Shown: piece by piece, positions 1,466 to 62,442 of the stretch | Layout: each line of letters opens with the position of its first letter | Numbering within the stretch: the stretch's first letter is position 1 | Source: Utricularia gibba | Lineage: Eukaryota; Plantae; Magnoliophyta | NCBI GenBank assembly: GCA_002189035.1 | Contig: NEEC01000014.1 | Coordinates: 248,001-312,000 of the forward strand | Reading direction: 5' to 3' | Length of the DNA stretch: 64,000 nt | Made by a program: the position numbers and the translations under genes | Notes under the pieces: generated by a model | What the model was told of the DNA's origin: nothing | Databases searched by the model: none | What the model saw: the letters and a program-made list of their open reading frames with translations, nothing else

Positions 1466-2408
1466 ATGGAACGCCAAACACCATTCAAGATGTTACTGAC
1501 GCAATCTATCCGGAATGGGTTGAAACTCGTTTTCTTTTTTCTACTACTTTTGGGATGATCCTCGCATTTCTTTACAAAGGTATGCCCATCTTGAGTATAA
1601 CCCTAACCAAGGCAGTTATCAATTCCAGCATCAAACCAACCTCCCTCCAAGTGGATTCGACCGACGTTCTTGCTATAGCAGGTATGATTTCCTCTTAACG
1701 CAAAGATTAAAGAACGGAAAACCTTCTTTATATCTTCTCTCCAAGTTACGGAGCTATGAGGCTCGGCACAAGAGATGTGCTCCGTGTACATTTCTATATA
1801 ACATGACAATTCATGCCCTCAAATTCAACATGTCTACTGCACTCTTCGAATGCAAGTACGTTATATGGCTCCCTTCGGATGGATTAGGAAATAGAATCCT
1901 CAGTCTTGCTTCCACATTTTTGTATTCTCTTCTCACTGATAGGGTTATCCTCGTTGATCTCTTTTGTGAACCCTTTTCCTGAGAGTTTTTGGTTGCTTCC
2001 TTTGGACTTCCCGTTGGCTCATAAATTGGATGGTTTTAACAAAGAATCTGAGGAATCCTTCGGGAAACTATTGGGAAACAACTTGTTGGGTAATTCAGGT
2101 ATCTCAACCCCTCCACAACTCTACGCATACATCCACCTATACATAAACTTTGGAGAAGTCGATAAACGTTTCTTTTGTGATGAAGATCAATCATATGTAA
2201 CGGAGGTACCCTGGTTGATGATCCTGTTGTATCTATATTTCGTCCCCCTCTTTCTTCTCGATGACATGTTTTGAGCAGGAACTAGATAATCTATTTCCTG
2301 ACAAGGAGAGTGTGTTTCATTTCTTGGCCCAGTATCTGTTCCATCCAACCAATTCCGTTTGGGGCTCGTGAGCAGCTTCTACAAAACTTATCTATAGGGA
2401 TTTGATGT
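1466..2408 (+). pseudogene. GT37 fucosyltransferase-family pseudogene, 5' ~60%, frameshifted and truncated
   Basis: Starts MERQTPFKMLLTQS like 60844-62442; contains DGLGNRILSLAS and FCDEDQSYVT; has stops and frameshifts; homology ends after GFDV at 2408. Confidence 0.93.
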
Positions 2409-4925
2409 GTGCTCCTGATCACCAAGAAATTCATGCCAATTCTTCCTGATTCGTATCCCCTTTACCATCGCATTTGTGCTCGTATATGTGTGGAGATGAT
2501 CGGTATCCATCTCTTAATCAGAACCTGATATTGTTGCATAGTAATTGCAAATACGCCTTGCCCACCGCACACCCTATCACCGTCGTCGACATAACCAGCT
2601 GCATCCCAGAGCATGTACTCGCGCACAGTGAATTGGGACTTTAAAACTCGGATAGCAACAATATTGGTTCCGATTAAGAGATGCGACACCGATCTTCAGC
2701 AGCACCGCTGCCAGCATGAGCCCGACAGTAAAGGTGACGCGGAACAGGGAGAATTGTTGTGAATTGATGACGCTTAGTGTTTTTAGCTTATAAAAACAAT
2801 GTGTTTTAATGTAACTTTTCAATCTTTTAGTAATTTTACTAATATTAATATTTTTATGCCCAGAAGTTGATTAAATAATTGATTTAATAGTTTCCTAGTT
2901 GTTAATAACAATTTTTTCCCAAGTCTTAATAGCAGCATTTCCAAAATCACCAAGTAAATTCTTACAAGCACTATGGCATGTAGCAAGTTGGAAGAGATTA
3001 GACTAAAGTGACAAATTCTTCAACCCTGGATATTTTCATTAGCATCCGTAAACTGACTTCCTTTCAAATTTTTAAGTCATAAAAAAACTGTCAAATTACT
3101 TACACTGATGATCCACAGTTGGAAGGTTTAACTGTGATTGAACCATTGATTTTTTTTAATTTTTTTCTTATGAAAAAATATGACATTTTGATTAAATCGT
3201 AATTGAACCATGATTGAATCATGATTTTTTTATATATTTTAAAATGGTTCAGATTTAATTCAATTGTTTTGATTAATGATTCCCTATTCACTTTCTTCAT
3301 ACGTGAGTTTGGTTTTATTAAGTTTATCATTTTTCATGGAATACAACCCATAAAGCCATTTCAAAGCTCTTCGGCAAAATGAAAGGGATTTGACTTGGTT
3401 CTTTGTTGCTTTTGCACAAGTCATGTATAATTCTTGATCGGAGTCATCATTTTCCCTTCTAGCAAACTTAGAAAACATTTAAAATAGATACGAATATAAC
3501 TTATAGTTTACTTCTCTATCAAAGATGATTTCTTCCTTGATTGTATGTAATAACCGATGCTATCATCTAGTAACTACCACATAGTATCTAAAACCAAACT
3601 ACAAAATAACATATAGATCACCCCTGTAAGTATCCATCCAAAAGCCTTCACCAATCGTTGCCTCATCTATTTTGAATTTATATTTCAACTGAGTGCCCGT
3701 ACACCAAAATTAGTATGGCATGCTATTTTAATCAAGTATGACTTCAGACAAGCTTCCAGGAGGTAGGCTCTAAAGCTCTAATCCACTCCCAATATAAATA
3801 GTATGTTGCAATTTACTGCACTTAAAATGGGCCCAATGCATTTTCCTATTTACTAATGCTTTTGTGTTAAACTTTTCTTTTACAATGAGTTGCATCAAGT
3901 TCAACCGATTGTAAAATAAATACTACAAAAGATTACAATAATTGTCTAATTTAATATTTTTGAATTTTTCATAAAAATTGTTGAGTCAAATCCAAAAAAG
4001 TCATGAGTTTAGATTGAGTCAGATTCAATTCCGAATTCATCCCCAAATTTTAAAACACTGGCACAAGTCATTTAGATCGCCCACCCCTCGCATCCGTGCA
4101 ATTCAGTTCATATATGAGTGTTTCTTTAACCCAAAAAAAAAAAAAGGACTTTCTGCATTTATGCATGTCATCCTTACACTTGGGCCATGCTGATCTGTTG
4201 TATGTTGTTCCAATTTTATCGGGTGTCCACGTAGAGACATGCGTTTCTTCTTCTTCTTCTTCTTCCGTTTATCAGCAAAAAGAAATCACTTTTTTTTATT
4301 GTGATGACAAAACGCTTAATATAACAAGTCAGCCCACATCGCCGTTTCTTCTTTAATATAAATCGTACCTCCATAAACCAGATCTTCTGAAGGAAAAACA
4401 CGAATTCATAGTTATAAAAAACCATTGTTTTTTGTTTGGTTGATTCAGCTTCGTTATGCAATAAAAGGGCTTTGTAAGAACACTAATCCTTACGAAACTC
4501 CAGTATGTTCTGAACTTAAAAATAGGGGCTTATTATTCTATGCATAGCGTCTTAATAGCTTCACTTTTTACTTCAATAACCCTAAAGATGGCAATATCCC
4601 AAGAGGTGGAGATTTGGCGTTCGGGGGTGGTTGCACGATGCCGCATTTCTGGTTATCTGTACGTGCAAAGTTTCCCAAACGAAACATGTAGAATAAGAAC
4701 AGCAGTGTAATTTTTGTATAGACCTCATTCATTCATCTCTTACATAAACGGAGGAAAAGACACTCATATGCAGTCCAAGGGGTAGTTGCATGAGCACAAA
4801 TGGGTTAAGTGACAGCACCTTATTACACTTGAGGACTGTTTATTGTCGATTACATGACATAGGAAAAGATACGGGAGCAAGTGCCGGGGAATTCGTAGAA
4901 GACAAACGCCCACATGTCGTCTTTG

Positions 4926-5462
4926 TTATATGAATTCCCATTTGGGTACACTCGCACTGATAATAGTACCAGCCACTGGTGGTGGAGGGTTGGCAAATAA
5001 TTTTGCATTTAGAAACAGAACCCCATTAGTCAGGTTTGAACAGGCAGCTGCTTGAAGTTGAATGGACAGACGACAAGGTAGCCAAGGAAACAGGAAAACA
5101 ACATTAGAGAAAGAATTTGCGGCCAATGTGAAGGCAACGGTTCCTGTGGTACCCGTTGAAGTTGTGGCCACCACAACCTCCCGTTGCGGCAGTGGCGGTG
5201 GCTGTGGTGGTGGCAGTGGCGGTAGCACTGGCGGTGGCAGTGGGACTGCAAGACAAAGAAGCCTTACAGGTTGGTTGAGAAGAGGAGGGATTGTAGTACC
5301 AGGATTACAGTTCCCGTCACTGGTACAACACACGTTGCTGGTTAGGTTCAATCCGAACATTCCCGGAAAGAGGTTGGCGGATGCCGGCACCATGGCCGTG
5401 ACAAACAGAATGACCATCCCGAGGGATAATGGAATGGACAGAACAAGGTTTGTATGAGCCAT
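4926..5462 (-). CDS. Secreted phylloplanin/Pollen Ole e 1-like protein with internal Pro-rich tract (178 aa)
   Basis: Hydrophobic signal peptide; NLTSNVCCTSDGNC..PVRLLC..VVATTSTGTTGTVAFTL..CRLSIQLQAAACSNL follows the phylloplanin-type Cys spacing; TATA box 56 bp upstream of the ATG. Confidence 0.75.
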   Translation of the reverse strand: MAHTNLVLSIPLSLGMVILFVTAMVPASANLFPGMFGLNLTSNVCCTSDGNCNPGTTIPPLLNQPVRLLCLAVPLPPPVLPPLPPPQPPPLPQREVVVATTSTGTTGTVAFTLAANSFSNVVFLFPWLPCRLSIQLQAAACSNLTNGVLFLNAKLFANPPPPVAGTIISASVPKWEFI

Positions 5463-7448
5463 CTCTTTTCCACGTTAGGCAGTGAATGACGGAGGGTAAG
5501 AAATAACCACTATTTATAAGCGGCTTCGAACTTGTTCGCACAGGAGACTTTTCCAAAGGCAATTAAATCCCTAGACAAATAGAGCAATTAACCGGTCGAT
5601 TGTATTACATACCTGTTCATTTATTGTTCAAATCCATAACCGGGGCGAGTTTGATTAGAGATTAATTATTAGCACATGGTCAGTGCCCACTCGCCAATTC
5701 AAGTCAAATCCCGCGTGGAGGCATCCTTTTCCTCCAATTACACCATCTCTTCGTACCAACTCTTAATAAAGTGTCAAAGAATCGTCAGTAAGAAAAGTGA
5801 AACAAGTGCCAATGATTATGTATCTTGAATATGTGTGTTTTGGTGCACATGAAAAAGCAACTGCTCTTCTCTCTGTGGAAGTGCTCTCTCGGCATTCAAC
5901 TCTGGGATACGTAGGCATACGCTAATTTTGCGGCCAAGCCACTCTAAGAAATAGTATTTTGTACTCTGCAGTAGTTACTCTCAATACAAAACATAAAATA
6001 ATGCTGTGAGGGCCGTAGATTAACGGCTCTTTTGCATTGATTCTGATGCTTCACATTTTCAAAAGATGGCTTTTATGATCCAAGGGTTTTGAGACGAACC
6101 AACAGCTTATTTTTGCCAAGAAAAAAAAAGTTTCATTGCGAAGTTCGCGTGCGAGTGTTCCAGAAGCATGACGCAGGTACAGCAGATGAGAAATGGGGTC
6201 TTGAATTACTGCAACTGTAAACGAGAACAACTGACGAGGTTTAATTGGGGAGCTACGACTAAAACCCTAAACCCTAAAATGAGTGAGGGCAATAACGAGG
6301 TTTAATTACATGCCTAGCTACGCAAAATACACTCAAAGCCCTAAAACATAGATTGCGCAATTACGCGATAAAACCTTCTGAATTTAATTAATTCCCGTGC
6401 ATTCATTCACATTTCAGAATTATACTTTTAGGGGCCCCTCTGAATCCGGAAAGACATCATTATGTCTACTTTCATAGACCCTGAAATCTAAATGTCTCAC
6501 CTACGCGCCATGACTCAACGTTAGTGGATGAGAGATTTAGAAAAAAAAGAACTTGGTATGTTATTTAAAGAAGGATTAACTTTCATGTGTTTTATAGAAA
6601 ATTTTACGATTGAATTAACTGAATTTTTATAGGATATTGATTATAGACAATATTATATAAAATATTATCAAAATACTGATAATTCAAAATCTAATTAAAA
6701 AAGGTATTTTTTTTCATCGTAACCTTAAATTAGAGTGATTTTTGATAAAAGGTTTAAGATGATGAATTTATTCACAAAAGAAGAGAGAATAGCAAATATA
6801 TGTGTAAAAAAAAATTTTTTGACGTAAGAGGGATAATAGTATTTTTTTGAATTATGAGATTGGTTAAATCCATCTAAATATTGATAAGAAAATTAAATCC
6901 ATCCAAATAATGGGTTTGTGTATCACTATTACTTAAGATTTAAATAATAAAATTTTGAAGATATCTATTAGATATTAATTACAACAAAACTTATGAATAA
7001 CTTGTATTATTTAAGATAAAATCAACATTTCATATATTACTGATCCTTATGGGTGGTTTGTTTCGTAGATAAGGTTGTGTAGATATAGCTTATTCGAGTA
7101 TATGCAATTGTATTTTGTGTGTTTAAAGAGTGATTCATATTTGAATTTTTATGGAAGATATTATTTGATAACCTATTATAAATTGTCATAGATTTTGTGA
7201 AAAAGGTTTAAGATACGAAAACATAAATTGAAACTCAAGTGACGTCACTTAATTAAGGGAATTAGTTATTGAGATTTTGTTTCCTACTTTGTATCTCATT
7301 GTATTGATTTTTACTGTTTTTTCCAAATAATCGGTTATAGAAATAAGTAAAAATCTATACTCACTTACATTCTATTATAAGTAGACATAAAAATAGCCTC
7401 ATGTTATTTTTATTAGAAGTTAGAGCAACGAGGTATACACTAATAGGT

Positions 7449-8118: not shown

Positions 8119-9642
8119 AATGTGTTAAGTTGATATATGGGAGATGAGTTGGGTAGAAAGTCTAGTGAACTGAACATTTCCACTATTCGGTTTAAGTATT
8201 TGATTCTGGATGAATACATCATCAATCAGGCTCAAGATGGCCGAATACCCCGGGGTATAGGAGAGAGACCCCTTCCTCACTTAAGTCTCCCAATCCCCAT
8301 AGCATACTTGGAAAGCAGTCTTCGCTTTCTACTCCACCCCCTCATTGTTCAATTTCTACATATATTTGCTATTCTCTCTTCTTTTGTGAATAAATTCATC
8401 ATCTTAAACCTTTTATCAAAAATCACTCTAATTTAAGGTTACGATGAAAAAAAATACCTTTTTTAATTAGATTTTGAATTATCAGTATTTTGATAATATT
8501 TTATATAATATTGTCTATAATCAATATCCTATAAAAATTCAGTTAATTCAATCGTAAAATTTTCTATAAAACACATGAAAGTTAATCCTTCTTTAAATAA
8601 CATACCAAGTTCTTTTTTTTCTAAATCTCTCATCCACTAACGTTGAGTCATGGCGCGTAGGTGAGACATTTAGATTTCAGGGTCTATGAAAGTAGACATA
8701 ATGATGTCTTTCCGGATTCAGAGGGGCCCCTAAAAGTATAATTCTGAAATGTGAATGAATGCACGGGAATTAATTAAATTCAGAAGGTTTTATCGCGTAA
8801 TTGCGCAATCTATGTTTTAGGGCTTTGAGTGTATTTTGCGTAGCTAGGCATGTAATTAAACCTCGTTATTGCCCTCACTCATTTTAGGGTTTAGGGTTTT
8901 AGTCGTAGCTCCCCAATTAAACCTCGTCAGTTGTTCTCGTTTACAGTTGCAGTAATTCAAGACCCCATTTCTCATCTGCTGTACCTGCGTCATGCTTCTG
9001 GAACACTCGCACGCGAACTTCGCAATGAAACTTTTTTTTTCTTGGCAAAAATAAGCTGTTGGTTCGTCTCAAAACCCTTGGATCATAAAAGCCATCTTTT
9101 GAAAATGTGAAGCATCAGAATCAATGCAAAAGAGCCGTTAATCTACGGCCCTCACAGCATTATTTTATGTTTTGTATTGAGAGTAACTACTGCAGAGTAC
9201 AAAATACTATTTCTTAGAGTGGCTTGGCCGCAAAATTAGCGTATGCCTACGTATCCCAGAGTTGAATGCCGAGAGAGCACTTCCACAGAGAGAAGAGCAG
9301 TTGCTTTTTCATGTGCACCAAAACACACATATTCAAGATACATAATCATTGGCACTTGTTTCACTTTTCTTACTGACGATTCTTTGACACTTTATTAAGA
9401 GTTGGTACGAAGAGATGGTGTAATTGGAGGAAAAGGATGCCTCCACGCGGGATTTGACTTGAATTGGCGAGTGGGCACTGACCATGTGCTAATAATTAAT
9501 CTCTAATCAAACTCGCCCCGGTTATGGATTTGAACAATAAATGAACAGGTATGTAATACAATCGACCGGTTAATTGCTCTATTTGTCTAGGGATTTAATT
9601 GCCTTTGGAAAAGTCTCCTGTGCGAACAAGTTCGAAGCCGCT

Positions 9643-9650
9643 TATAAATA
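9643..9650 (+). promoter_or_regulatory. TATA box of phylloplanin-like gene (mirror at 5511-5518, minus)
   Basis: TATAAATA in a plausible position upstream of ATG 9699. Confidence 0.65.
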
Positions 9651-9698
9651 GTGGTTATTTCTTACCCTCCGTCATTCACTGCCTAACGTGGAAAAGAG

Positions 9699-10235
9699 AT
9701 GGCTCATACAAACCTTGTTCTGTCCATTCCATTATCCCTCGGGATGGTCATTCTGTTTGTCACGGCCATGGTGCCGGCATCCGCCAACCTCTTTCCGGGA
9801 ATGTTCGGATTGAACCTAACCAGCAACGTGTGTTGTACCAGTGACGGGAACTGTAATCCTGGTACTACAATCCCTCCTCTTCTCAACCAACCTGTAAGGC
9901 TTCTTTGTCTTGCAGTCCCACTGCCACCGCCAGTGCTACCGCCACTGCCACCACCACAGCCACCGCCACTGCCGCAACGGGAGGTTGTGGTGGCCACAAC
10001 TTCAACGGGTACCACAGGAACCGTTGCCTTCACATTGGCCGCAAATTCTTTCTCTAATGTTGTTTTCCTGTTTCCTTGGCTACCTTGTCGTCTGTCCATT
10101 CAACTTCAAGCAGCTGCCTGTTCAAACCTGACTAATGGGGTTCTGTTTCTAAATGCAAAATTATTTGCCAACCCTCCACCACCAGTGGCTGGTACTATTA
10201 TCAGTGCGAGTGTACCCAAATGGGAATTCATATAA
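9699..10235 (+). CDS. Secreted phylloplanin/Pollen Ole e 1-like protein (identical mirror copy)
   Basis: Identical 178-aa ORF; TATAAATA at 9643-9650. Confidence 0.75.
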   Translation: MAHTNLVLSIPLSLGMVILFVTAMVPASANLFPGMFGLNLTSNVCCTSDGNCNPGTTIPPLLNQPVRLLCLAVPLPPPVLPPLPPPQPPPLPQREVVVATTSTGTTGTVAFTLAANSFSNVVFLFPWLPCRLSIQLQAAACSNLTNGVLFLNAKLFANPPPPVAGTIISASVPKWEFI

Positions 10236-12752
10236 CAAAGACGACATGTGGGCGTTTGTCTTCTACGAATTCCCCGGCACTTGCTCCCGTATCTTTTCCT
10301 ATGTCATGTAATCGACAATAAACAGTCCTCAAGTGTAATAAGGTGCTGTCACTTAACCCATTTGTGCTCATGCAACTACCCCTTGGACTGCATATGAGTG
10401 TCTTTTCCTCCGTTTATGTAAGAGATGAATGAATGAGGTCTATACAAAAATTACACTGCTGTTCTTATTCTACATGTTTCGTTTGGGAAACTTTGCACGT
10501 ACAGATAACCAGAAATGCGGCATCGTGCAACCACCCCCGAACGCCAAATCTCCACCTCTTGGGATATTGCCATCTTTAGGGTTATTGAAGTAAAAAGTGA
10601 AGCTATTAAGACGCTATGCATAGAATAATAAGCCCCTATTTTTAAGTTCAGAACATACTGGAGTTTCGTAAGGATTAGTGTTCTTACAAAGCCCTTTTAT
10701 TGCATAACGAAGCTGAATCAACCAAACAAAAAACAATGGTTTTTTATAACTATGAATTCGTGTTTTTCCTTCAGAAGATCTGGTTTATGGAGGTACGATT
10801 TATATTAAAGAAGAAACGGCGATGTGGGCTGACTTGTTATATTAAGCGTTTTGTCATCACAATAAAAAAAAGTGATTTCTTTTTGCTGATAAACGGAAGA
10901 AGAAGAAGAAGAAGAAACGCATGTCTCTACGTGGACACCCGATAAAATTGGAACAACATACAACAGATCAGCATGGCCCAAGTGTAAGGATGACATGCAT
11001 AAATGCAGAAAGTCCTTTTTTTTTTTTTGGGTTAAAGAAACACTCATATATGAACTGAATTGCACGGATGCGAGGGGTGGGCGATCTAAATGACTTGTGC
11101 CAGTGTTTTAAAATTTGGGGATGAATTCGGAATTGAATCTGACTCAATCTAAACTCATGACTTTTTTGGATTTGACTCAACAATTTTTATGAAAAATTCA
11201 AAAATATTAAATTAGACAATTATTGTAATCTTTTGTAGTATTTATTTTACAATCGGTTGAACTTGATGCAACTCATTGTAAAAGAAAAGTTTAACACAAA
11301 AGCATTAGTAAATAGGAAAATGCATTGGGCCCATTTTAAGTGCAGTAAATTGCAACATACTATTTATATTGGGAGTGGATTAGAGCTTTAGAGCCTACCT
11401 CCTGGAAGCTTGTCTGAAGTCATACTTGATTAAAATAGCATGCCATACTAATTTTGGTGTACGGGCACTCAGTTGAAATATAAATTCAAAATAGATGAGG
11501 CAACGATTGGTGAAGGCTTTTGGATGGATACTTACAGGGGTGATCTATATGTTATTTTGTAGTTTGGTTTTAGATACTATGTGGTAGTTACTAGATGATA
11601 GCATCGGTTATTACATACAATCAAGGAAGAAATCATCTTTGATAGAGAAGTAAACTATAAGTTATATTCGTATCTATTTTAAATGTTTTCTAAGTTTGCT
11701 AGAAGGGAAAATGATGACTCCGATCAAGAATTATACATGACTTGTGCAAAAGCAACAAAGAACCAAGTCAAATCCCTTTCATTTTGCCGAAGAGCTTTGA
11801 AATGGCTTTATGGGTTGTATTCCATGAAAAATGATAAACTTAATAAAACCAAACTCACGTATGAAGAAAGTGAATAGGGAATCATTAATCAAAACAATTG
11901 AATTAAATCTGAACCATTTTAAAATATATAAAAAAATCATGATTCAATCATGGTTCAATTACGATTTAATCAAAATGTCATATTTTTTCATAAGAAAAAA
12001 ATTAAAAAAAATCAATGGTTCAATCACAGTTAAACCTTCCAACTGTGGATCATCAGTGTAAGTAATTTGACAGTTTTTTTATGACTTAAAAATTTGAAAG
12101 GAAGTCAGTTTACGGATGCTAATGAAAATATCCAGGGTTGAAGAATTTGTCACTTTAGTCTAATCTCTTCCAACTTGCTACATGCCATAGTGCTTGTAAG
12201 AATTTACTTGGTGATTTTGGAAATGCTGCTATTAAGACTTGGGAAAAAATTGTTATTAACAACTAGGAAACTATTAAATCAATTATTTAATCAACTTCTG
12301 GGCATAAAAATATTAATATTAGTAAAATTACTAAAAGATTGAAAAGTTACATTAAAACACATTGTTTTTATAAGCTAAAAACACTAAGCGTCATCAATTC
12401 ACAACAATTCTCCCTGTTCCGCGTCACCTTTACTGTCGGGCTCATGCTGGCAGCGGTGCTGCTGAAGATCGGTGTCGCATCTCTTAATCGGAACCAATAT
12501 TGTTGCTATCCGAGTTTTAAAGTCCCAATTCACTGTGCGCGAGTACATGCTCTGGGATGCAGCTGGTTATGTCGACGACGGTGATAGGGTGTGCGGTGGG
12601 CAAGGCGTATTTGCAATTACTATGCAACAATATCAGGTTCTGATTAAGAGATGGATACCGATCATCTCCACACATATACGAGCACAAATGCGATGGTAAA
12701 GGGGATACGAATCAGGAAGAATTGGCATGAATTTCTTGGTGATCAGGAGCAC

Positions 12753-13694
12753 ACATCAAATCCCTATAGATAAGTTTTGTAGAAGCTGCTCACGAGCCCC
12801 AAACGGAATTGGTTGGATGGAACAGATACTGGGCCAAGAAATGAAACACACTCTCCTTGTCAGGAAATAGATTATCTAGTTCCTGCTCAAAACATGTCAT
12901 CGAGAAGAAAGAGGGGACGAAATATAGATACAACAGGATCATCAACCAGGGTACCTCCGTTACATATGATTGATCTTCATCACAAAAGAAACGTTTATCG
13001 ACTTCTCCAAAGTTTATGTATAGGTGGATGTATGCGTAGAGTTGTGGAGGGGTTGAGATACCTGAATTACCCAACAAGTTGTTTCCCAATAGTTTCCCGA
13101 AGGATTCCTCAGATTCTTTGTTAAAACCATCCAATTTATGAGCCAACGGGAAGTCCAAAGGAAGCAACCAAAAACTCTCAGGAAAAGGGTTCACAAAAGA
13201 GATCAACGAGGATAACCCTATCAGTGAGAAGAGAATACAAAAATGTGGAAGCAAGACTGAGGATTCTATTTCCTAATCCATCCGAAGGGAGCCATATAAC
13301 GTACTTGCATTCGAAGAGTGCAGTAGACATGTTGAATTTGAGGGCATGAATTGTCATGTTATATAGAAATGTACACGGAGCACATCTCTTGTGCCGAGCC
13401 TCATAGCTCCGTAACTTGGAGAGAAGATATAAAGAAGGTTTTCCGTTCTTTAATCTTTGCGTTAAGAGGAAATCATACCTGCTATAGCAAGAACGTCGGT
13501 CGAATCCACTTGGAGGGAGGTTGGTTTGATGCTGGAATTGATAACTGCCTTGGTTAGGGTTATACTCAAGATGGGCATACCTTTGTAAAGAAATGCGAGG
13601 ATCATCCCAAAAGTAGTAGAAAAAAGAAAACGAGTTTCAACCCATTCCGGATAGATTGCGTCAGTAACATCTTGAATGGTGTTTGGCGTTCCAT
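12753..13694 (-). pseudogene. GT37 pseudogene, mirror copy
   Basis: Mirror of 1466-2408; lacks the extra C, so its middle ORF is 154 aa rather than 122 aa, but it is still disrupted. Confidence 0.93.

Positions 13695-18809: not shown

Positions 18810-18860
<51 letters not shown>
18810..18860. repeat. Compound (TA)n(TG)n microsatellite
   Basis: Read directly. Confidence 0.95.
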
Positions 18861-18861
<1 letters not shown>

Positions 18862-29513: not shown

Positions 29514-29614
29514 ATGGTGATACTTTTTGTGGTCATCAGTATCCTTGTAGTCAATATGACGTCTTGGACCCTAGTGACAATAAGGATACTAATGACCACA
29601 AAAAGTATCACCAT
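29514..29614. ncRNA. Candidate pre-miRNA-like hairpin
   Basis: 40-bp arms 29514-29553 and 29575-29614 with 3 mismatches (one G:U on the plus strand) and a 21-nt loop. Confidence 0.45.
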
Positions 29615-49200: not shown

Positions 49201-49536
49201 TGCTACTCTGTGATGGATTAGTTAAAGGAGGAGACGTTTTTTAGCTTTCGAACTTGAAGCCTGGCCTGGTTTTGAGCTTCCGAACTTGAAGTTAGACACT
49301 AAGAGACTTGGGTGAAACAGTTGAGAGAGATACAGCAGTATTCTTTTGACACAAAAAATATTTTTTTTATACATCTGGTTTCAATTCATATTTATACTTC
49401 AGTGCTGAATCGCACCCCAGGTCTAACGGTTATATTTGTAGCCATTGGAGGTCCCTATCTCGGGCCGCTCACAAGTGTGATTGGGCCTATCGAGTCCAGC
49501 CCAGTAGGTTGTTGGTACAGCCTGCATGGTTATCAC

Positions 49537-52500
49537 TCAATTTATGGCCCATTGTTGTTTCCATCTTCCCACTCCTCTCGCTGCGCGATTTCCTCTCTCT
49601 CGGAGGGTTTGATCAGATTCATCACCATCCAACACTCCACCTTGATGCTCAGATTCTGATGGTTCCGAGTCTCGGTAAATTGATTTTGTCTCTTGTAGTC
49701 CCATCAGGTTGCGCAAATAACAGAATTGCCTTGGGTAGAGGAGTTTTGTGAGTGGGTCGGCAATCTGTTCTTCGGTTGACACATACTCCACCTCAATTGT
49801 CTTGTCTCGTACATAATTTCTGAGTACGTCGTATTTTATGTGTATATGCTTGCATCTCCCAAACTATGCTGGATTTTTGGCCATGCAGAGGGCAGATTTG
49901 TTGTCGATCTTGAGGCTTATGTTCTTTTCCAAGTTTATTCCGAGGTCCCTCAAGAGTTTCAGTATCCATACAGCATGGTTTGCAGCTGCTGCCCCAGCCA
50001 TGTACTCAGCTTCGGCTGATGACTGTGCAACTATTTCTTGTTTTCTGCTGTTCCACACAAAAGCAGTCCCTCCAAGTAAGAAAATATAACCGGTGGTTGA
50101 TTTGTAATCTGTGGTGTCCCCTGCAAAATCACTATCTACGAAGCATTCCAAAAGAAGGTTAGCATGTTTTTTGTAATGTAATTTGAGGTTTACCGTGCAC
50201 CTTACATAATTTAGCACCTTCTTTGCTGCCTCATAGTGGTTTTGATGTGGGTTGCTCATGAATCTAGCGAGAAGGCTTATAGCATAGGCAATATCAGGCC
50301 TGGTTGCAGATAGATACATCAAGGACCCTATCAAGCTTCGATAGGCTTTAGCATTTGCCAGATTTCCCGGATCACAGATTTTGTTTGCTGTTTTTTCTGT
50401 GATGGCCACAAGTTTGGCATCAGGAGACAGCAGCACAGAGATATGTTTCCTTTTATTGAGTTTATATTTTTGTACCAGATCAGTAGCATACTTTGTTTGA
50501 CTCAAATAAATGCCTTTGCTTGTCTGAAGTACTTCCAATTCTAAGAAATAGCTCATGAGTCCTAGATCAATCATCTCAAACTGAGTCATAAGTAGTTTTT
50601 TTTGTTCTTGGAGCATGTCTTCGTTGTTCCCTGTGATGAGTATATCATCAACATACAAAGAAATAATGACTTTGTCACTTTTATTGCAGGTGAGCACATA
50701 AAGAGTGGGATCATTGCTGCTTCTAATAAATCCTTGTTGGCTGAAGTAAATGTCAATTTTGCTATACCACTCTTTTGGTGCCTGTTTGAGGCCATAGAGA
50801 GCCTTGTGCAGTAGGTACACCTTATTCTCATCTCCTTCAATTTTAAAACTAGGGGGTTGTTCTACATACACTTCTTCCTTTAACTCCCCATTCAAAAATG
50901 CTGATTTTACATCTAAGTGAAATACTTTCCAACCCATGCAAGCAGACAGTCTGAGAAGAAGTTTAATTGTGTCCAGTCTTGCCACCGGTGCAAAGGTTTC
51001 TTCGAAGTCTACTCCTTTATGCTGTGAGTACCCTTTAGCCACTAGTCTCGATTTTAGTTTGACCACTGAGCCATCTGGATTTAACTTGGTTCTTAGTATC
51101 CATTTGGTTCCTATCACCTACTTGTGCATAGGCCGATCAACTAATGTCCAAGTGTTATTTTTTTCTATGGTGGTTAGCTCAGTAATCATAGATTTCCTCC
51201 ACTCTGGATGCTTTGTTGCACTCGAGACAGAATTAGGTTCTGTAGTGATGAGAGCTTTGTCTAGGATTTCTTCCCAACTACGGTATCTCTGGTTTAAAGG
51301 TATGTCTTCAGGATCACTAAAGCTTCCATCACAAGGTACGAACTGATCACTGTCGCTATAGTTTTCAAGTGCTTCTACGTTTTCGGCTTGCTCTAAGGTT
51401 AATCTGTCAAATCTGTTCTTGCTGTCAACATTTACTCTGATATCTTGAATTTCATGGACTATTTCGGTTTCTTTTCCAGAGTTTTCATCTTGAATGATGG
51501 TTTGAATAGGTTCTGGATTTTGCTCTTCCAAGGTTTCTGGGGCCGGTACTTCAGTCCCTGAGAGGTTGCCTATGTGCTCTTCAGCTGAATTTTCAATTTC
51601 TATTTGGACTTCATTTTCCATTGCGTTTGCTGCAGTGTGATCTACAGGTCTGAATGAGGTGGAGATCAGGTTCCCATTTCGTTCTACTTGGCTTTCTTCA
51701 TTGGCACAGCTGAGTTGATCACCTTGTTGACTTTCTGTGTCTGAACTTTCTGTGATCACTTCAAGCAAGGGCAAGCATTTTACGATCTGGTTCATGGATA
51801 TTCCGCCATTTGTAGATGTTTTACTTTCCTCAGCTTTCCACTTCCAATTTTTGGATTCATCGAAGGAGACATCTTTGCTTACAACAATTTTCTTGCTATT
51901 TAGATCAAGTACCCTGTATCCTTTAATTGTCTCACTGTACCCCATAAGAATTCCCATTTGTGCCTTTTTGTCCAGTTTGCTTCTTTTCTCTTTAGGAATA
52001 TGTACATAGCATACACTACCAAATATTCTGAAATGCTGAATATCTGGTTTTTTTTCATAGAACAACTCATACGATGTCTTGTAGGTTTCAGTTCCAGAGG
52101 TAGGTAACCTATTTAGGATATACACTGCTGTGTTTACTGCTTCTGCCCAATATTTCAGAGGTACTTGATTCTCATAGAGCATGCATCTAGCCATTTCTGT
52201 TATGGTTCGGTTTCTTCTCTCACTGACTCCATTCTGTTGAGCAGTGTAGGGAGCTGTAAACTGGTGAATTATTCCTACAGAGTCACATATGTTGGTCAGT
52301 TCCTTGGGAGTATATTCTCCCCCGTTGTCAGTTCTGAGATGCTTAATTTTTACCCCACATATGTTCTCAGCTTGTGCTTTAAATTTCTTGAAGCAATCCA
52401 GTACTTTAGACCTGTGTTTTAGAAAGAAAACCCAACAAAGTTTAGTGAAGTCATCAACAAAAATTAAGTAGTGTCGATTTCCAATTGGTGAGTCAACATT

Positions 52501-54090
52501 CATTGGCCCACAGACATCACTGTGCACTAATTCCAGTTTTCTAGTGGTTCTCCAGGAGCTTCGGGGAAAGGGTGGTCGGGTCAATTTTCCATATTGGCAA
52601 CTTTCGCATAGGTCATGATTGGCTGTGAGCATAGGTAACCCTTCTACCAAGTTAAGCTTCTGGATATTGTTTAAGGAGGTGAAGTTGTGGTGACCACATC
52701 TTTTGTGCCAGAGGTTCGCAGTGTCTTTAGTTGAAAGACTCATATCTGAGTTTATGCAACCTCTTTCCTCAGGTTTCAGCGGAAAAACTCTATTTTCCAT
52801 TCCAACGGTCAGTAAAATCTTTCCTGCAAAATTCCTGACTTCACATTGTCCTTGAAGAAAAGCCACTGAATGACCCCTTTTTATCAGCTGCCCCACGCTG
52901 ATCAAGTCATGGGAGTAGCGAGAGACATGGTACGTGTCTTTGATGTCCAAGAATTTGTCTATAATTTCCAACCTAACAGTCCCAATTCCATCCACCTTTA
53001 TTTCATTTCCATCTGCTATCTCTATGCTTTTTCCATGTAGGGGTTGGTATGTTGTGAAATTTGTGAAATCGTTGCAGATATGGTTGCTACATCCACTATC
53101 TATTAGCCATGTTTGGTTTCCTTTCAGCTTGGTGGTGATTGCTAGCATTGTATCCCTCCTAAGCATGTAGAGGTCAACAACTTCCTTTTCATTGAATAGT
53201 TTTGAAGTAATTACAACAAACATGGCTTTTGAGTTTTCAGATCCGAAGTCTCCTCGTTTTCCCTTTTTGTTTCCTTCCTTTTCATCTTCCTTCCTAGCTT
53301 TGCACACCCTTTGAATATGCCCCTTCTCTTGACAGTAATTGCAGATTTTTTCTGGGTGGTAGAAACAATTTTCTGGCATGTGGTTTTTATGTTTGTAGTA
53401 AGGGCAGGTAGGGTAGTCCCCCTTTTTTTCTCTCTCACGGTTTTGAGTAGTTGACCCATTGAACAGGGCCTTGAAGGCTCCTTCACTGGCTTCCAAATAT
53501 TGATATCGTTTTTCTCTTATTTCAGCATCTTCCAGTGCTTCGATTAGTTGGGCTGGGGTGAGTTTCTTGATGCCTCCAGTTGAGACAATGGTAGTAACAG
53601 CGGAGCTGTATGTTCGAGGTAAGACCCCAATGATCTTCTCTTTTACTCTTCGGTCATCAACAAGCTCTCCAAGTGCCTTGAGTTTCTTTACTGCAGGTAG
53701 CAAGTTGTCCTTGAATGTTGACACGGAACTTTCAGGCGCAAGTTTCAGATCGTCTATCAGCCGCCAAAGGTTGGTAATCTCTTTTTCTTTCCATTCCTCC
53801 GTAACAGAGAATTCCTCAGCGAGGGTATCCCAAACCTCTTTGGGCGTGGTGCAGTGTATGATTAGGTTGTAGACTTCGCCAACTAGTGCAGTGTCCAAAA
53901 CACTTCTGGCCATGAGAATCTTGTCGTCCCATTTTGCTTCAGCAGTAGCATCTACATCTGTGAACTTGGGATCTTCTTGAAAGACTTCCCAAAGCTTCAG
54001 TGTTCTCAGGTGATTGGTCATTTTTACTGCCCATATAGTATAATCTTTTCCATCGAAGATAGATGGTGGTAGTGCGTTTGAGGATGACAT
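49537..54090 (-). pseudogene. Copia gag-pol, one reading frame with two premature TAG stops (51118-51120, 49864-49866)
   Basis: ORFs 51118-54102, 49864-51117 and 49537-49791 share a frame. Motifs WLIDSGCS, LRTDNGGEY, LYGLKQAP, YVDDIL and QIADPLTK; the frame runs into the 3' LTR. Confidence 0.93.
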
Positions 54091-54184
54091 TTCAGCTTTC
54101 ACAATTCCTGCAAGAAAGATTTATGAACGAGTATAATTGTAAGTGTGATACAGTTAATCTTTGGGATCTTGTGGGACTTTTCAG

Positions 54185-54203
54185 AATCCCACAGCTGTCA
54201 CCA
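54185..54203 (-). other. Primer-binding site complementary to a tRNA-Leu 3' end
   Basis: Plus strand AATCCCACAGCTGTCACCA abuts the LTR and matches my recollection of the plant tRNA-Leu(UAG) 3' end including CCA. Confidence 0.75.
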
Positions 54204-55325
54204 TGAAAGGAGGAGATATTTTGTAGCTTCCGAACTTGAAGCCTGGCCTGGTTTTGAGCTTTCAAACTTGAAGTTAGACACTAAGAGACTTGAGTGAAAC
54301 AGCTGAGAGAGATATAGTAGTATTCTTTTGACACAAAAAATATTTTTTTTTATACATTTGGTTTCAGTTCATATTTATACTTCAATGCTGAATCGCACCC
54401 CAGGTCTAACGATTATATTTGTAGCCATTGGAGGTCCCTATCTTGGGCCGCTCACAAGTGTGATTGGGTCTGTCGAGTCCAGCCCAATAGGTTGTTGGTA
54501 CAGCCTGCATGGTTATCACTCAATTTATGGCCCATCGTTGTTTCCATCTTCCCACTCCTCTCGCTGTGCGATTTCCTCTCTCTCGGAGGGTTTGATCAGA
54601 TTCATCAGGATCAGTTCATCACCATCCAATAATTAGTTGATTGAGTTCAGGCTGCTAACAGAAGAGCTAATTACATCCACTTAATATTTCTGCAAAATTT
54701 AAATTATTGTAAGTAGAAAAGCTTAAGATAGAGACATCGCCTAGACAAACCCAAACTAGAAAAAAATATAAAAATTGTAAACTTAATCTAAAAAAATCTG
54801 AACAATGAAATTTTCACTAACTCAAACATTGACCATGAAAATAGCAGAAAAATGCATTGATTGAGATGTCATTTACATACAATTGCAAAAACAAAACCAA
54901 TATTACAAAATTAGCAAAATACAGAACTTGTGGCGTGCAATCTAATCCCTTAGAAACCCAAAATAGGAAGAATCGTTGCTCTTAGAAATCTAAAATATGA
55001 AGAATTGATTGATTAAAAAATAACCCTAAAAAACTAATAATTGCTTGGCTGGTTAACTGGCCAGGTAAGAAAAATCGGTTAATCGATTTGATTCACTGGT
55101 TAACGGCCGAGTCACAGTCACAGTTGTGGTGACACTATTCTACACTGATTGGTTAGGGATGGTAAGAAGAATATCGGGATCTTTAGCAGGCCGTTATGGT
55201 TGGGAACCAATTCACACCAGTCCTTCCTGATCAGAATCGCATTTTAGTGTGTTATGCTCATGCACATATTGGTGCTGGTGATGATCGGCATCGTATCCCT
55301 CAAGCAGAACCCAATATTGAAGCGC

Positions 55326-55645
55326 TTCATCGCCTCACCCCTATGTATACCTCCGTTTGGATAATTTGTATGACAATTTTGATAAACATTTTTTTTATGA
55401 AAAGACCCAACATATATTTTGAATGTGCTATGGTTGATATTTCGTTCAAATCTATACTTTACTTCATCCTCATTCTCAATAATATTTTTTGAGGAAACAC
55501 TTCATAAACTCTTTCCACACAAAGAGGTAATTTTTTCATTTTTAGCTAGATATTTGTTCAATCCACAAGAGTCAATTTGGGGGTTAGAAGATTTTATGAA
55601 GCTTATTTATTTGATGCTCACTTCAAATTAGGGATTCAAATTTGA
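55326..55645 (+). pseudogene. GT37 pseudogene, middle fragment
   Basis: PHPYVYLRLDNLYDNFDK..LARYLFNP..FKLGIQI, frameshifted; closest to the 43890 copy. Confidence 0.85.
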
Positions 55646-55671
55646 AATAACTGAGATGGTTAAATATATGC

Positions 55672-57028: not shown

Positions 57029-59976
57029 AGAAGCAAATACTTTTAAAAGATTGGACTGAAATTGTAAACACAGCCGTGTACATTCTAAACAAGCTACCTA
57101 CCTATGGAATTGAAGACTAAAACACTCCTTATGAGCTTTTCTATGAGAAAAACCAGATATTCAATGCCTCATAATTTTTGGTTGCATATGTTATGTGCAC
57201 GTACCTTTAGAGAAAAGAATCAAATTGGATAAAAAGGTACAAGTGAGAATCTTCATATAGTATAACGGCATAATCAAGGGATATAGAGTGCATGATCTGG
57301 ATAGTAAGAGATTTGTTATAAACAGAGATGTCTCCTTCGATGAATTTAGGAAATGAGACTGGAAAATTGAGGAAAGTGAAGCTCCGACAAGTGGCAGCAC
57401 AAATGCTTACCACTTCTTAAAGCTATCTTAGACAATTGAGACATGGAAAATGCACACAATGATCAATCCAACTCCACTGATGAAGAAAGCCAAGTGGAGG
57501 AAAATAATAATTTAACTTCCACCCCTAGGAGATCTATAGATCACACAATATCAAATGCATTGGGAAGTCATGAACTAACTACAAATGACAATTTAAGTGA
57601 AGAACACACAAGTAACTTCTCAGACAGTGAAGAACCAGTTTTGGAAACATTGGAAGAGCAAAATCAGATATTAAATCAAAGCACTAACCTACATGAAAAC
57701 ACTAGAGAAGAAATTGCCATAGTTTGTGAAAATCAAGATGTTAGGGCAAGTGATGATTGTAATTCTGGAAGTGTCAATAACGGCAGAATTGATGGTCTAA
57801 ACTTGGTGCATTTTGAAAATAAAAAGGAAACCAATGATTTCAGAAATAGTGAACCACTCATACCTTGTGATGGAAGTTTTAGTGATCCTGAAGGAATATC
57901 ATTGAATGAGAGATATAGAAGCTGAGAAGAAATTGTAGATAGAACTATTGTTACTATCAAACCAAACTCTATGTCAAGTGCCTTAAGACATCCAGGCTGG
58001 AAAAAATCCATGATCACAGAGTTAAACCACCATAGAAAAAAACAACACATAAACCTTAGTAGATCGACCATTACATAGGAAAGCTATAGGAACAAAATGG
58101 ATACAAAGAACAAAGTTGAATTCAAATGGTTTGGAGCTTAGACTATAACCGAGATTGGTGGCTAAGGACTACTCACAACGAAAAGGAGTGGACTTTGAAG
58201 AAACATTTGCACTAGTAGTAAGACTAGACACAATCGAATTTATCCTTGGACTTTCTGCCTACCTAGAATGGAAAGTATTTCATTTAGATGTAAATTAGTC
58301 TTCTTAAATGGGGAATTAAAAGAGGAAGTTTATGTAGCACAACCATCTAGCTTTAAAATTAAAGAACATGAGAACAAAATGTATTTGTTGCATAAATCTC
58401 TTTATAGCCTCAAAAAAGCACTTAGAGAATGATATAGCAAAATTGATACTTGTACAATAAGGATTCACCAGAAGCAGCAATGATTCCACTCTCTGTGTGC
58501 TAAACTACAACAACAATGACAAAGTCATGTTTTTTATGTATATCGATGATATCCTCATCATAGTAAACAATGAAGAGTTGTTTTAGGAACAAAAAAATCT
58601 GCATATGAATCATTTTGAAATGATTGATTTAGGACTCATGAGTTACTTCTTATGGTTGGAAGTACTTAAGACAAATGATGCTATTTATTTTAGTCAACAA
58701 AATATGTTACTAACCTAGTGTGGAGGTATGAGCTAGATAAGAGAAAATATGTCTCGCTGCCGTTGTCCCTAGATGCTAAACTTGTGGCTACCACAAAAAA
58801 AAAAAAAAAAACAGCAGGCATAATCAGCAATCCAGGAAATCTAGCCAATGAAAAAACTTATCGAAATTTGATAGAGTCCTTGATGTATATATCTACAACC
58901 AAACCAGATATCAATTATGTTGTAGGACTCCTCTCTAGGTTCATGGCCAATTCACATCAAAATCTATGAGGCCGCAACAAAGATCTTAAATTATGTAAGG
59001 TGTAAGGTAAACCTCAAAGTCAATTATAAAAAAACATTCTAACCTTTTTCTGAGCTGTTTTATGGATAGTGATTTTTTAGGTGGTATCATAGATTATGAC
59101 TCCATCACTGGATATATCTTCTTGCTAGGAGGGATTGTATTTGCATGGAACAATAAAAAAAAAAAGAAATAGTTGCACAATCGTGGGCTGAAGCTGTGTA
59201 CTAGCAAGAGTGGCTACAGCGAATAACACCATCTGGATCTTGAAACTCCTAAAGGACTTGGGCATAAATCTGAAAAAAGACATAAGTATCAAGGTTGACA
59301 ACAAAATCCACCATCTGTATGTTTAGAGACCTGATATAGTTTGGAAGATGCAAGCATATAAACATAAAATACCACATACTCAAAAATTATGTACGAGACA
59401 AGATGATTGAAATGGAGTATGTGGCCTCTAAAGAATAGATTGCAGACCCACTTACAAAACTTCTTTATCCAAGGCAATTCTACTATTTGTGAAGCTTGAT
59501 GTGGCTACAAGAAACTCAATAGATCAACAAAAATTCCGAGGCATTTGAATCTGAGCATCAAGGTGAAGTATTGGATGTTGATGAATTGATTTTAATGAAC
59601 TTAGTAAAACCCTTCGAGGAAGAATAAATCGCATCACGTGATGAATGGGAAGATGAAAATGTTGGATCTAGAAATTAGATTATGAAATGTGCTGGTTGAA
59701 ATAGTAACTCACTAGGCTCAATTTTAATATGCCCGATCACACTCAAAGCAAAAGGTTCAAGACAAACAATTCCAATGATCATAAATGTAACTGTTGGATT
59801 TGTCCTCTAGCTCCATACTGTATTATAAATACTTGTAGGAACACATTGAATGATATACTTTTAAACTGCAAAGTTTACACAATATTCTTCGAAACATCAG
59901 AATACAGCTTCAAGTTCGGAAGCTTGAATCAGACTAGGCTTCAAGTTCAAAAGCTACAAACCATCTCCTCCTTTCA
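57020..59976 (+). mobile_element. 5'-truncated decayed Copia of the 49222 family (INT-RT-RH, 3' LTR 59569-59976)
   Basis: PCDGSFSDPE..LNERYRS shared with the 49222 element; PPT CAAGGTGAAG; LTR ends ATCTCCTCCTTTCA. Confidence 0.9.
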
Positions 59977-60194
59977 TATGACTCAAGGTTTTGTTGGGTT
60001 CACACCGAGGATGATTGTTGCACCTAGTACATCCATGTCCTCGAGTTCAGTCAATGGAACCACGCAACCATGTCCCACCAAACTATGATTGTATGACAAG
60101 AAGTGTGAAATCTGGGAAAGCTAATGATCCTCATACTAGACTTTGCCTCGATGCCATATGGGGAGGACACCAGCTAGTTAACGATGCACGTTAG
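59977..60194 (+). pseudogene. GT37 pseudogene, 3' end
   Basis: TQGFVGFTPRMI..HVPPNYDC..PHTRLCLDAIWGGHQLVNDAR*; its 3' flank is homologous to that of the 43890 gene. Confidence 0.85.
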
Positions 60195-60843
60195 CATCAT
60201 CTTGTCATGTTTTCACTATAATTTGCAATGATTTCTGTTACCACTTTCCGTTATGTTTTAAATTGAGTCATCAAATTGAACGATACAACAATTTGTGATG
60301 ACAGGTGTCCATTGAGCTTCAAGCTAGAGGTGAGTAGATTGGTCTTGTTGTCCGCAATTATCCCTCAACTCTTCAATCAGCTAACTGTTTCGTTTTTAAT
60401 TTCGCATAAACAACCACCACAAAATAAAGAGTCTGATTTAAAACTTCTTTAGTTCTAATTATCATAAACAGTGTTTGAACCTAACATGAAAATGATTTAT
60501 GAAAGCTGAGTACGATGTGCTTGTCTACCGGTTTTTTCCTATATTGGTTTAGTGAACAGATATCGACAGAATGGCGCCTTTGATTCATTTTTAAAACTGG
60601 GATTTTCCCAAGGATTTATTCGCTTAGAAATATAAACCACGTTGGAAATCAACACTCCATTTTCTTCCCTATCGTTCAAAAACTTTTGTAGTTGGAACAC
60701 TGATATTCATCTTCAATATCATTATGATAAGAGATTATATCGCTGCAAGATATCCATTTGAGAAGGTGAGAGATGCAAGAGAACAGCTTTCAGTCAATGC
60801 GCTAGCATCATTAAGTGGACATTTCCGATCAAAATGGTATGCT

Positions 60844-62442
60844 CTAGGATGCATTGGTATGGTCATTAACTAACTTCACTCCTCCCCAGTAATTATCAGC
60901 ACACGGTCTTGTATGCCTTATTACGCTTTCATCAATCACACGTTTCATCTTGCAGTCATATCTTGGGGGTATGAGGTAGCATGGTTCCATGGATACCACT
61001 CGTTCGCAGGGTCGATCATGGCCGGTTTGGTTCTTCGACTTGAAGATCATCCTTGGTGTTAACCCGCCTATGCCTTGAGCCGCATATCCGAAAGTTGATA
61101 ACGCACTTGTAACCAGTTCATCTGCTAAACTAAGCAGATAAATCTCGGCCAGTGCTTTTCGATCATGATCTCGGTTCCCAGTAGCTTGCTTCACTTCAAA
61201 ACTTGCTTGCTCAATCGCAACTATTTCTCCAGTTGTTGGAGCATTTTCCAAGTACAGTTTTCTGATTTCTTCAAAATAGTCTCGGCTCAGTGACGCTAGT
61301 AGAACAACGATCCTTTTTCCATTCTTCTTCATCATGGGCTCAGTCAAATTCACAGGCTCGTTTCGTGGGAGTAAGCCATTGCTCATAGTACACGAAAGGA
61401 TTTGATTAACAATATCTTGTGTTGGGATATTTTCGAAATCAAAATTCCGAATTTGGACCCCAAGTTTTACATCAAATCCTAATAGATAAGTTTTGTAGAA
61501 GCTGCTCACGAGCCCCCAAACGGAATTAGTTGGATGGAACAAATACTGTGCTAAGAAATGAAACACCGTCTCCTTGTCAGGAAATAGATTATCTAGTTCC
61601 TTCTCAAAGCAAGACATTGAGAAGAAAGAGGGAGCGAAATATAGATCCGAAAACATCATCAACCAGGGTACATCCGTTACATATGACTGATCTTCATCAC
61701 AAAAGAAACGTTTATCGAGATCTCCAAAGTTTATATATAGGTGGATGTATACATAGAGTTGTGGAGGGGTTGAGATACTTGAATTACCCAACAACTTGTT
61801 TCCCAATAGCTTCCCAAAACATTCCTCGGAATCTTTGTTAAAACCACTCAATTTATGGGCCAATGGGAAGTCCAAAGGAAGTAACCAAGAACCCTCAGGA
61901 AAGGGTTCACAAAAGAGATCAGAAATGGCATCCTTGGGATCAACGAGGAGAACCCTGTCGGTGAGAAGAGCATACAAAAATGTGGAAGCAAGACTGAGGA
62001 TTCTATTTCCCAATCCATCCACAGGGAGCCATATAACGTACTTGCATTCAAAGAGTGCACCACTAGACATGTTGATTTTGAGGGAATGAATTGTCATGTT
62101 ATATAGAAATGTATATGGAGCACATCTCTTGTGTCGAGCCTCATAGCTCCGCAACTTGGAGATAAGATATAAAGAAGGTTTTCTCATCTTTGATCTTTGC
62201 GTCAAGAGTAAATCATACCTACTATAGCAAGAAGGTCGATCGAATCCACTTGGAAGGAGGTCGGCTTGATGTTGGACTTGATAACTGCCCTCGTTAGGGT
62301 TATGCCCATGCTGAGCATACCTTCGTGTCATGTTGTAAAGAAATGCCAAGATCGTCCCAAAAAGTAGAAAAAAGAAAACAAGTTTCAACCAATGTCTGCT
62401 AGATTGTGTCAGTAACATCTTGAATGGTGTTTGGCGTTCCAT
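60844..62442 (-). CDS. FUT: GT37 fucosyltransferase-family protein, intact (532 aa)
   Basis: TM anchor; DGLGNRILSLAS, LGVQIR and ALAEIYLLSLADELVTS..STFGYAAQGIGGL motifs; closest intact relative of the IR pseudogenes. Confidence 0.95.
   Translation of the reverse strand: MERQTPFKMLLTQSSRHWLKLVFFFLLFGTILAFLYNMTRRYAQHGHNPNEGSYQVQHQADLLPSGFDRPSCYSRYDLLLTQRSKMRKPSLYLISKLRSYEARHKRCAPYTFLYNMTIHSLKINMSSGALFECKYVIWLPVDGLGNRILSLASTFLYALLTDRVLLVDPKDAISDLFCEPFPEGSWLLPLDFPLAHKLSGFNKDSEECFGKLLGNKLLGNSSISTPPQLYVYIHLYINFGDLDKRFFCDEDQSYVTDVPWLMMFSDLYFAPSFFSMSCFEKELDNLFPDKETVFHFLAQYLFHPTNSVWGLVSSFYKTYLLGFDVKLGVQIRNFDFENIPTQDIVNQILSCTMSNGLLPRNEPVNLTEPMMKKNGKRIVVLLASLSRDYFEEIRKLYLENAPTTGEIVAIEQASFEVKQATGNRDHDRKALAEIYLLSLADELVTSALSTFGYAAQGIGGLTPRMIFKSKNQTGHDRPCERVVSMEPCYLIPPRYDCKMKRVIDESVIRHTRPCADNYWGGVKLVNDHTNAS

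Follow-up and report, generated by a model that had tools for sequence, protein, structure and literature searches.

A lineage-specific GT37 gene array with GT61 and methyltransferase neighbours in a 64-kb stretch of Utricularia gibba DNA

The window considered here, 64,000 nucleotides of contig NEEC01000014.1 from Utricularia gibba (assembly GCA_002189035.1, positions 248,001 to 312,000), is plant nuclear DNA with a G+C content of about 32-45%; all positions given below are counted from its first letter. It holds an array of genes of glycosyltransferase family 37 (GT37), among which lie a GT61-family gene and a gene for an S-adenosylmethionine (SAM) methyltransferase, together with proline-rich genes, gene fragments and transposons. 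Intact GT37, GT61 and methyltransferase genes are found within 18 kb (27-45 kb), and an earlier interpretation made without database searches (the sequence-only reading) had postulated that the window is a metabolic-cluster-style locus for a mucilage or surface glycan, in which Golgi enzymes stand beside their candidate glycoprotein substrates.

Pfam searches identified four long open reading frames (ORFs) that match the GT37 profile PF03254 with E values of 1e-144 to 1e-158: b (27507-28871), c (39503-41122) and d (43875-45485) on the forward strand and g (60844-62442) on the reverse strand. These matches score 481-528 bits and are full-length, covering up to positions 10-475 of the 475 in the profile. 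Copies c (39515-41122), d (43890-45485) and g, the last with an ATG start, are intact and carry an N-terminal anchor, where Kyte-Doolittle hydropathy over 19 residues peaks at 2.1-2.6 (around residues 18-42). Copy b (26747-28871) retains an intact catalytic ORF of 454 amino acids (aa) behind a scrambled 5' end and a broken anchor region. Its first ~75 codons lie in three pieces (26838-26876, 27088-27195 and 27477 onward), and comparison of this end (26747-27549) with copy c reveals two insertions of ~200-260 nucleotides (nt) and a 37-nt piece that is inverted (26921-26957 in b, 39552-39588 in c). Other GT37 sequences, mapped by tblastn, are fragments. Fragment a (1466-2409, forward strand) spans residues ~1-325 and is frameshifted; its nearest relative is copy g, to which it is 64-90% identical in pieces that fall in differing frames. 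Fragment a' (12752-13694, reverse strand) is its palindromic twin, while on the forward strand fragment e (55333-55651) retains ~110 residues and fragment f (60033-60188) ~54 residues of the C-terminus. The identification of seven GT37 copies in the sequence-only reading was thus correct as to family, but three copies are intact, one has a damaged 5' end, and the remainder are fragments, two of which are one sequence.

Divergence among the four copies is graded. At synonymous sites it (dS) is 0.135 between b and c, which share 90% amino-acid identity, ~0.5 from these to d, and ~1.5 to g (up to 1.6), and the ratio of nonsynonymous to synonymous divergence (dN/dS) is 0.20-0.36. These values argue for serial local duplication under purifying selection, with g as the oldest branch of the array. 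In a phylogenetic tree, the four copies are monophyletic (SH-aLRT 100) and fall inside a core-Lamiales FUT1-like clade; their stem measures 0.9 substitutions/site, a branch so long that its placement is uncertain. Furthermore, each copy has altered 53-63 of the 222 columns (24-28%) that are near-invariant (at least 95% conserved) among 100 FUT1-like homologues, and by this measure of column retention the copies do not behave as AtFUT1 orthologues. When compared with solved relatives, they score 457-472 bits to AtFUT1 (5KOP) versus 410-414 bits to AtFUT4 (9NQH). Because the columns are altered and because AtFUT1 slightly outscores AtFUT4, the copies are neither plain FUT1 orthologues nor FUT4/6-like. 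The activity that had been quoted for the array, fucosylation of arabinogalactan-proteins (AGPs) by FUT4 and FUT6, belongs to that other subfamily.

The GT37 genes of Arabidopsis are also arrayed, as FUT1/FUT2, FUT4/5/10 and FUT6-9. As in those arrays, the window encodes type-II anchored PF03254 proteins in a tandem, lineage-specific arrangement; unlike them, the window copies are set off by a very long stem within the Lamiales FUT1-like clade and have changed about one-quarter of the near-invariant columns. A species-clade pattern of GT37 arrays has been described (PMC7900004), and the acceptor varies from member to member, being xyloglucan, AGP arabinose, rhamnogalacturonan I (RG-I) or RG-II, and is not readable from sequence (PMC10933551). 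Since plant GT37 genes are usually of this kind and their acceptors vary (PMC10933551), a home-grown array without a readable acceptor is the expected pattern for the family. The window is a clear example of the growth and decay of a GT37 array within one lineage.

The GT61-family gene consists of two exons on the forward strand (30943-31908 and 32018-32428), has an N-terminal anchor, and is collinear with its Buddleja homologue P0241. The exons cover residues 21-368 and 366-493 of that protein (21-493 overall); the gene is complete and intact, and its presence, as listed in the sequence-only reading, was confirmed. The exons were searched individually, not as a joined protein, and under these conditions exon 2 gives 21.3 bits to the end of PF04577 (cut-off 27), at profile positions 108-137, and exon 1 gives no match. 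Full-length homologues at 49-55% identity do bear PF04577 and are mostly unnamed or labelled AER61-/POMGNT2-like; among solved structures, there is a weak match, confined to one motif, to animal POMGNT2/EOGT. Of 114 columns conserved to 95% or more among 74 homologues, the gene keeps 100, while five control homologues lose 1-4. Judging from these relatives, it is a member of an uncharacterised, conserved branch that goes by the name AER61-/POMGNT2-like. It resembles the better-known plant GT61 proteins (XAT/XAX1, MUCI21 and the N-glycan XylT) in its N-terminal anchor and a putative C-terminal PF04577 (DUF563) motif region, but differs from them in lying in this separate branch. XAT/XAX1 are xylan side-chain transferases, and the addition of pentose side chains, which the sequence-only reading had cited as established for GT61 enzymes, is an activity of other subfamilies that is not established for the AER61-/POMGNT2-like branch.

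The methyltransferase gene (35802-37091, reverse strand) is intronless and encodes a 429-aa protein of the At1g29790 family with a membrane anchor at residues 40-58; the gene is present and its product anchored at the N-terminus, as had been proposed, and it is intact. It matches this widespread family, annotated as 'probable methyltransferase', with an E value of 1e-160 and 86-95% of the query covered, and of 147 conserved columns it has retained 141 (96%). In a tree, its partner within the Lamiales is a sequence from Genlisea aurea, and both are long-branched, which fits a fast-evolving, Lentibulariaceae-like lineage. The gene had been assigned to the pectin-linked Methyltransf_29 proteins, but the full-length PF03141 domain is missing: the match is limited to positions 98-217 of 506 (120 positions, 32.9 bits), a stretch that Methyltransf_11 matches as well. 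Because no more than this part of PF03141 is matched, the protein is not a pectin methyltransferase of the QUA2/PMT type. It shares with QUA2/PMT proteins the type-II anchor and the class-I SAM-binding fold, and differs from them in its length of ~430 aa, its partial PF03141 match and its membership of the uncharacterised At1g29790 family. A literature search for At1g29790 returned no paper that mentions the gene.

To what extent this grouping is inherited can be judged from eight loci, each taken with 10 kb on either side of a homologue, that come from Salvia, Nyssa, Mercurialis, Buddleja, Genlisea and Musa (six species in all). The GT37 homologue of Salvia miltiorrhiza is accompanied by a rotamase gene and the methyltransferase homologue of the same species by a leucine-rich repeat (LRR) receptor kinase gene. 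In Nyssa, the methyltransferase lies beside an epimerase/3-beta-HSD-type gene and an RWP-RK gene, and the GT61 homologue beside a Ser/Thr kinase gene. The methyltransferase of Mercurialis has a START-domain gene and an LRR receptor kinase gene as neighbours, and that of Genlisea has peroxidase, ANTH, RUS6-type and GH9 genes and a DEAD-box helicase gene. Finally, the GT61 homologue of Buddleja is found with a Ser/Thr kinase gene and a bHLH gene, and that of Musa with a RING gene, a 2OG oxygenase gene and a second GT61 gene. At none of the eight loci did a second family of the window turn up, either by tblastn of the window proteins (seven loci) or among the called genes (Musa). Furthermore, families found on one chromosome lie far from each other: the GT37 and methyltransferase genes are 34 Mb apart in Salvia, and the methyltransferase and GT61 genes are 4.2 Mb apart in Nyssa. 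Ancestral synteny, which the sequence-only reading had named among the findings that would undo its proposal, is thus rejected for the sampled species. The combination came together within this lineage.

Two conserved pairings were seen in the course of this comparison. The At1g29790-type methyltransferase gene stands tail-to-tail with an LRR receptor kinase gene in both Salvia and Mercurialis (an asterid and a rosid), and in both Nyssa and Buddleja (Cornales and Lamiales) the GT61 homologue comes after a Ser/Thr kinase gene. The window copies of the methyltransferase and GT61 genes have lost both of these neighbours.

The sequence-only reading had also held that all recognisable protein genes of the window, transposable elements aside, are secretory. 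A Pfam scan of the 139 leftover ORFs of at least 55 residues, a resolution at which short exons would escape, returned GT37 fragments, hAT (DUF659), copia gag, DUF7796, Stig1 and nothing else, and it uncovered no hidden gene for a non-secretory protein. Because the scan matched only known fragments and transposon domains, the statement holds at this resolution. Several of the smaller genes nevertheless turned out to be less than had been described. The STIG1-like gene is a fragment: the Stig1 profile PF04885 matches at 32699-32932 (reverse strand) with 25.6 bits over positions 13-57 of 85, an incomplete domain. A possible signal-peptide ORF (33171-33037) lies 100 nt upstream of the Cys-rich ORF (32932-32699), and no further Cys-rich part occurs nearby, so that the whole (32699-33171) is listed as a STIG1-like remnant or short gene. 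The DUF7796-like membrane-protein fragment was recognised correctly as such. It is a piece of a first exon (30166-30447, forward strand) with a membrane anchor and 36 domain residues, which match positions 3-38 of the 346-position profile with 58 bits, and the window holds no additional DUF7796 pieces by Pfam. A 38-nt match (92%) joins the end of this fragment, 30415-30452, to 16320-16357, where another very small remnant of DUF7796 may lie.

Three Pro-rich genes of Ole e 1/phylloplanin type had been counted. Pro-rich ORFs do exist, but two of the three represent one palindromic copy, and a copia element interrupts the third. The duplicated ORF, PRP178 (4926-5462, reverse strand), encodes a 178-aa Pro/Cys-rich protein with a signal peptide and hydrophobic N-terminus, and its twin (9699-10235, forward strand) is 100% identical. 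PRP178 has no Pfam match at E values up to 1, and a search of 1.84 billion representatives gives no homologue at E values up to 1e-3; its AlphaFold model, built from the single sequence, is poor (pLDDT 45.7). The Ole e 1/phylloplanin label (PF01190) consequently finds no sequence match, its sole support being a language-model comparison in which PRP178 reaches 0.93 to 'Ole e 1 / extensin family' and 'non-classical AGP31'. PRP178 contains neither a run of Ser-Pro3 or longer nor an [A/S/T]-Pro dipeptide and, under the Hyp-contiguity rule, is a poor candidate for arabinogalactan or extensin-type glycosylation. A 131-aa Gly/Ser-rich ORF runs antisense to PRP178 (5062-5457, forward strand) and most likely owes its existence to the Pro codons of the opposite strand. 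In the third Pro-rich gene (19253-25445), which is extensin-like and His-rich, a copia element has inserted inside the Ser-Pro4 repeat. The 5' part of this gene (19253-19612, forward strand) is ended by the insertion, and the 3' part (24727-25445, forward strand), which has no Pfam match, has in-frame stops ahead of a possible Ole e 1-like tail.

The doubling of PRP178 and of GT37 fragment a reflects a large inverted repeat at the start of the window. Its left arm (1-6808) is an inverted copy of its right arm (8353-15159), and a spacer of 1544 nt separates the two; since the left arm runs to the window edge, the arms may exceed their visible length. Each arm holds a GT37 fragment, the PRP178 ORF and a U6 small nuclear RNA (snRNA) gene adjoining the Pro-rich gene (4137-4238, reverse strand, and 10923-11024, forward strand), the latter a full-length match with 57.9 bits against a gathering score of 44. 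Because the arms are inverted copies of one another, two of the supposed GT37 copies and two of the supposed Pro-rich genes are one sequence counted twice. The window illustrates how a cluster can look richer than it is through palindromic duplication and the presence of gene fragments. Over 6.8 kb, the arms are identical save for one run of C residues (C5 at 2245-2249, C4 at 12914-12917), as a result of which fragment a falls in two frames and a' stays in one (residues 181-313). This difference may have arisen as a homopolymer error in long reads, or else as the first mutation to follow the duplication. With arms that differ in nothing but a homopolymer length, an error type typical for long reads, the entire 15-kb inverted repeat might be a fold-back mis-assembly of a single 6.8-kb segment, in which the GT37 fragment, the Pro-rich gene and the U6 gene were each doubled. 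We consider such an artifact possible but doubtful, given that the repeat is internal to the contig rather than at its end and that the spacer between the arms is unique.

What, then, does the grouping of these genes mean? The probable answer, in our view, is an ordinary lineage-specific GT37 array whose neighbours act independently. The array itself grew by repeated local duplication in one lineage, first giving rise to g, then to d and then to b and c, and it has shed fragments amid transposon-rich DNA. In this model, the GT61 and At1g29790-type methyltransferase genes would have been moved into the array by rearrangement in a rapidly evolving lineage of the Lamiales, probably the Lentibulariaceae. 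The enzymes are most likely Golgi-resident, each with a glycan substrate of its own, and the Pro-rich, STIG1-like and DUF7796 pieces would be bystanders, mostly broken. Such a history builds on the gene content and intactness of the locus, the order of its duplications, the purifying selection on the copies and the lack of conserved neighbours elsewhere, all of which are observed; the Golgi location, suggested by the N-terminal anchors and the families concerned, and the independent function are inferred. There are, however, several results that do not sit easily with independent neighbours. By a rough estimate, three unrelated Golgi-type families within 18 kb exceed the chance expectation: if ~1% of plant genes are Golgi glycan-modifying, finding two among ~four non-GT37 neighbours has a P of ~1e-3 per locus, a post hoc estimate for one among >1500 windows rather than a computed genome-wide value. 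The grouping is lineage-specific, as in true metabolic clusters. In addition, both glycosyltransferases have departed from their families at conserved columns (24-28% in GT37, 11% in GT61) while staying under purifying selection (dN/dS, for GT37), and such column changes would fit a new specificity.

These considerations lead to another hypothesis, in which the locus is co-functional. The GT37, GT61 and methyltransferase proteins would act one after another in the Golgi, with a single secreted glycan or glycoprotein as their common target (gland mucilage or a surface glycoprotein, for example), and their linkage would be kept by co-regulation. This would account for three non-homologous, intact, membrane-anchored enzyme genes at 27-45 kb, for a grouping that is missing from the eight loci in six other species and was hence assembled in the lineage, for the rapid change of GT37 and GT61 at otherwise conserved sites while purifying selection was retained, and for the secretory nature of all recognisable non-transposon protein genes in the window. 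However, the idea of enzymes beside their substrates is not well served by a single distinct, intact 'substrate' gene that lacks the Ser-Pro3+ and [A/S/T]-Pro motifs and homologues, or by STIG1 and DUF7796 sequences that are fragments. The nearest relative of the methyltransferase, in Genlisea, lies among unrelated genes, and the window gene is undiverged, which is unlike a typical recruited cluster gene and looks like what is expected of a conserved, housekeeping-type gene. Furthermore, no activity is known for members of this GT61 branch or the At1g29790 family, and the established activities quoted for the enzymes belong to other subfamilies. Known plant biosynthetic clusters, such as those for thalianol and avenacin, serve specialised metabolism and yield small molecules. 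The window resembles them in having at least three non-homologous enzyme genes, assembly in one lineage and interspersed transposons; it differs in that its enzymes are of Golgi glycan-modifying types, and in that co-expression and a shared pathway are what define the known clusters. Thus, of the proposed metabolic-cluster-style locus, the lineage-specific co-location of three unrelated enzyme families stands, but the substrate side is reduced to one intact Pro-rich gene, and we regard a co-functional locus as unlikely. The opposite view, that the neighbourhood has no functional meaning whatsoever and that the GT37 array is decaying after losing an ancestral role such as xyloglucan fucosylation, can point to the altered near-invariant columns in every copy, to the broken 5' end of copy b and to the fragments, which make up half of the GT37-derived segments. 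Nevertheless, a dN/dS of 0.20-0.36 that holds across dS values of up to 1.6, and three uninterrupted ORFs of at least 530 codons in DNA of ~36% G+C, argue for function, and decay of this kind seems to us very improbable. An array of functional GT37 genes with independent neighbours remains the interpretation that we prefer.

A particular form of the co-functional hypothesis would nonetheless have wide consequences. It supposes that a FUT1-derived GT37 clade took on a new acceptor in this lineage and that, jointly with the neighbouring GT61 and methyltransferase genes, it constitutes a gene cluster for Golgi glycans, one whose enzymes decorate a mucilage or glycoprotein destined for secretion. 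We think this distinctly unlikely. Gene clusters for Golgi glycans are not known to us in plants, and if the supposition were true, the locus would, as far as we know, be without precedent among plant extracellular glycans as an operon-like cluster. The concept of the plant metabolic gene cluster would then extend from small molecules to Golgi-made glycans, and two uncharacterised families, the GT61 branch and the At1g29790 methyltransferases, would gain candidate functions.

The remaining features of the window are mobile or repetitive. The Ty1-copia element that splits the Ser-Pro4 gene (19621-24726, forward strand) has gag, integrase and SH3 domains, and its long terminal repeats (LTRs), at 19621-19849 and 24509-24726, are 88-93% identical; because the LTRs have diverged to ~90% identity, its insertion is old. 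A second Ty1-copia element (49353-54612, reverse strand) has LTRs of 277 nt that are 95% identical. A degenerate copia remnant (57148-59586, forward strand) is inverted relative to this second element, with which it forms the inverted pairs I5-I10 (73-79% complementary), and Pfam detects remnants of a hAT-like transposase (DUF659) at 47919-49221 (reverse strand). Together, the four GT37 fragments, the two copia elements, the copia remnant and the hAT remnants mark a region prone to duplication and insertion. Finally, the hairpin noted in the sequence-only reading was recovered as a local inverted repeat at 29511-29617 (109 nt, 83% complementary), between GT37 copy b and the DUF7796 fragment.

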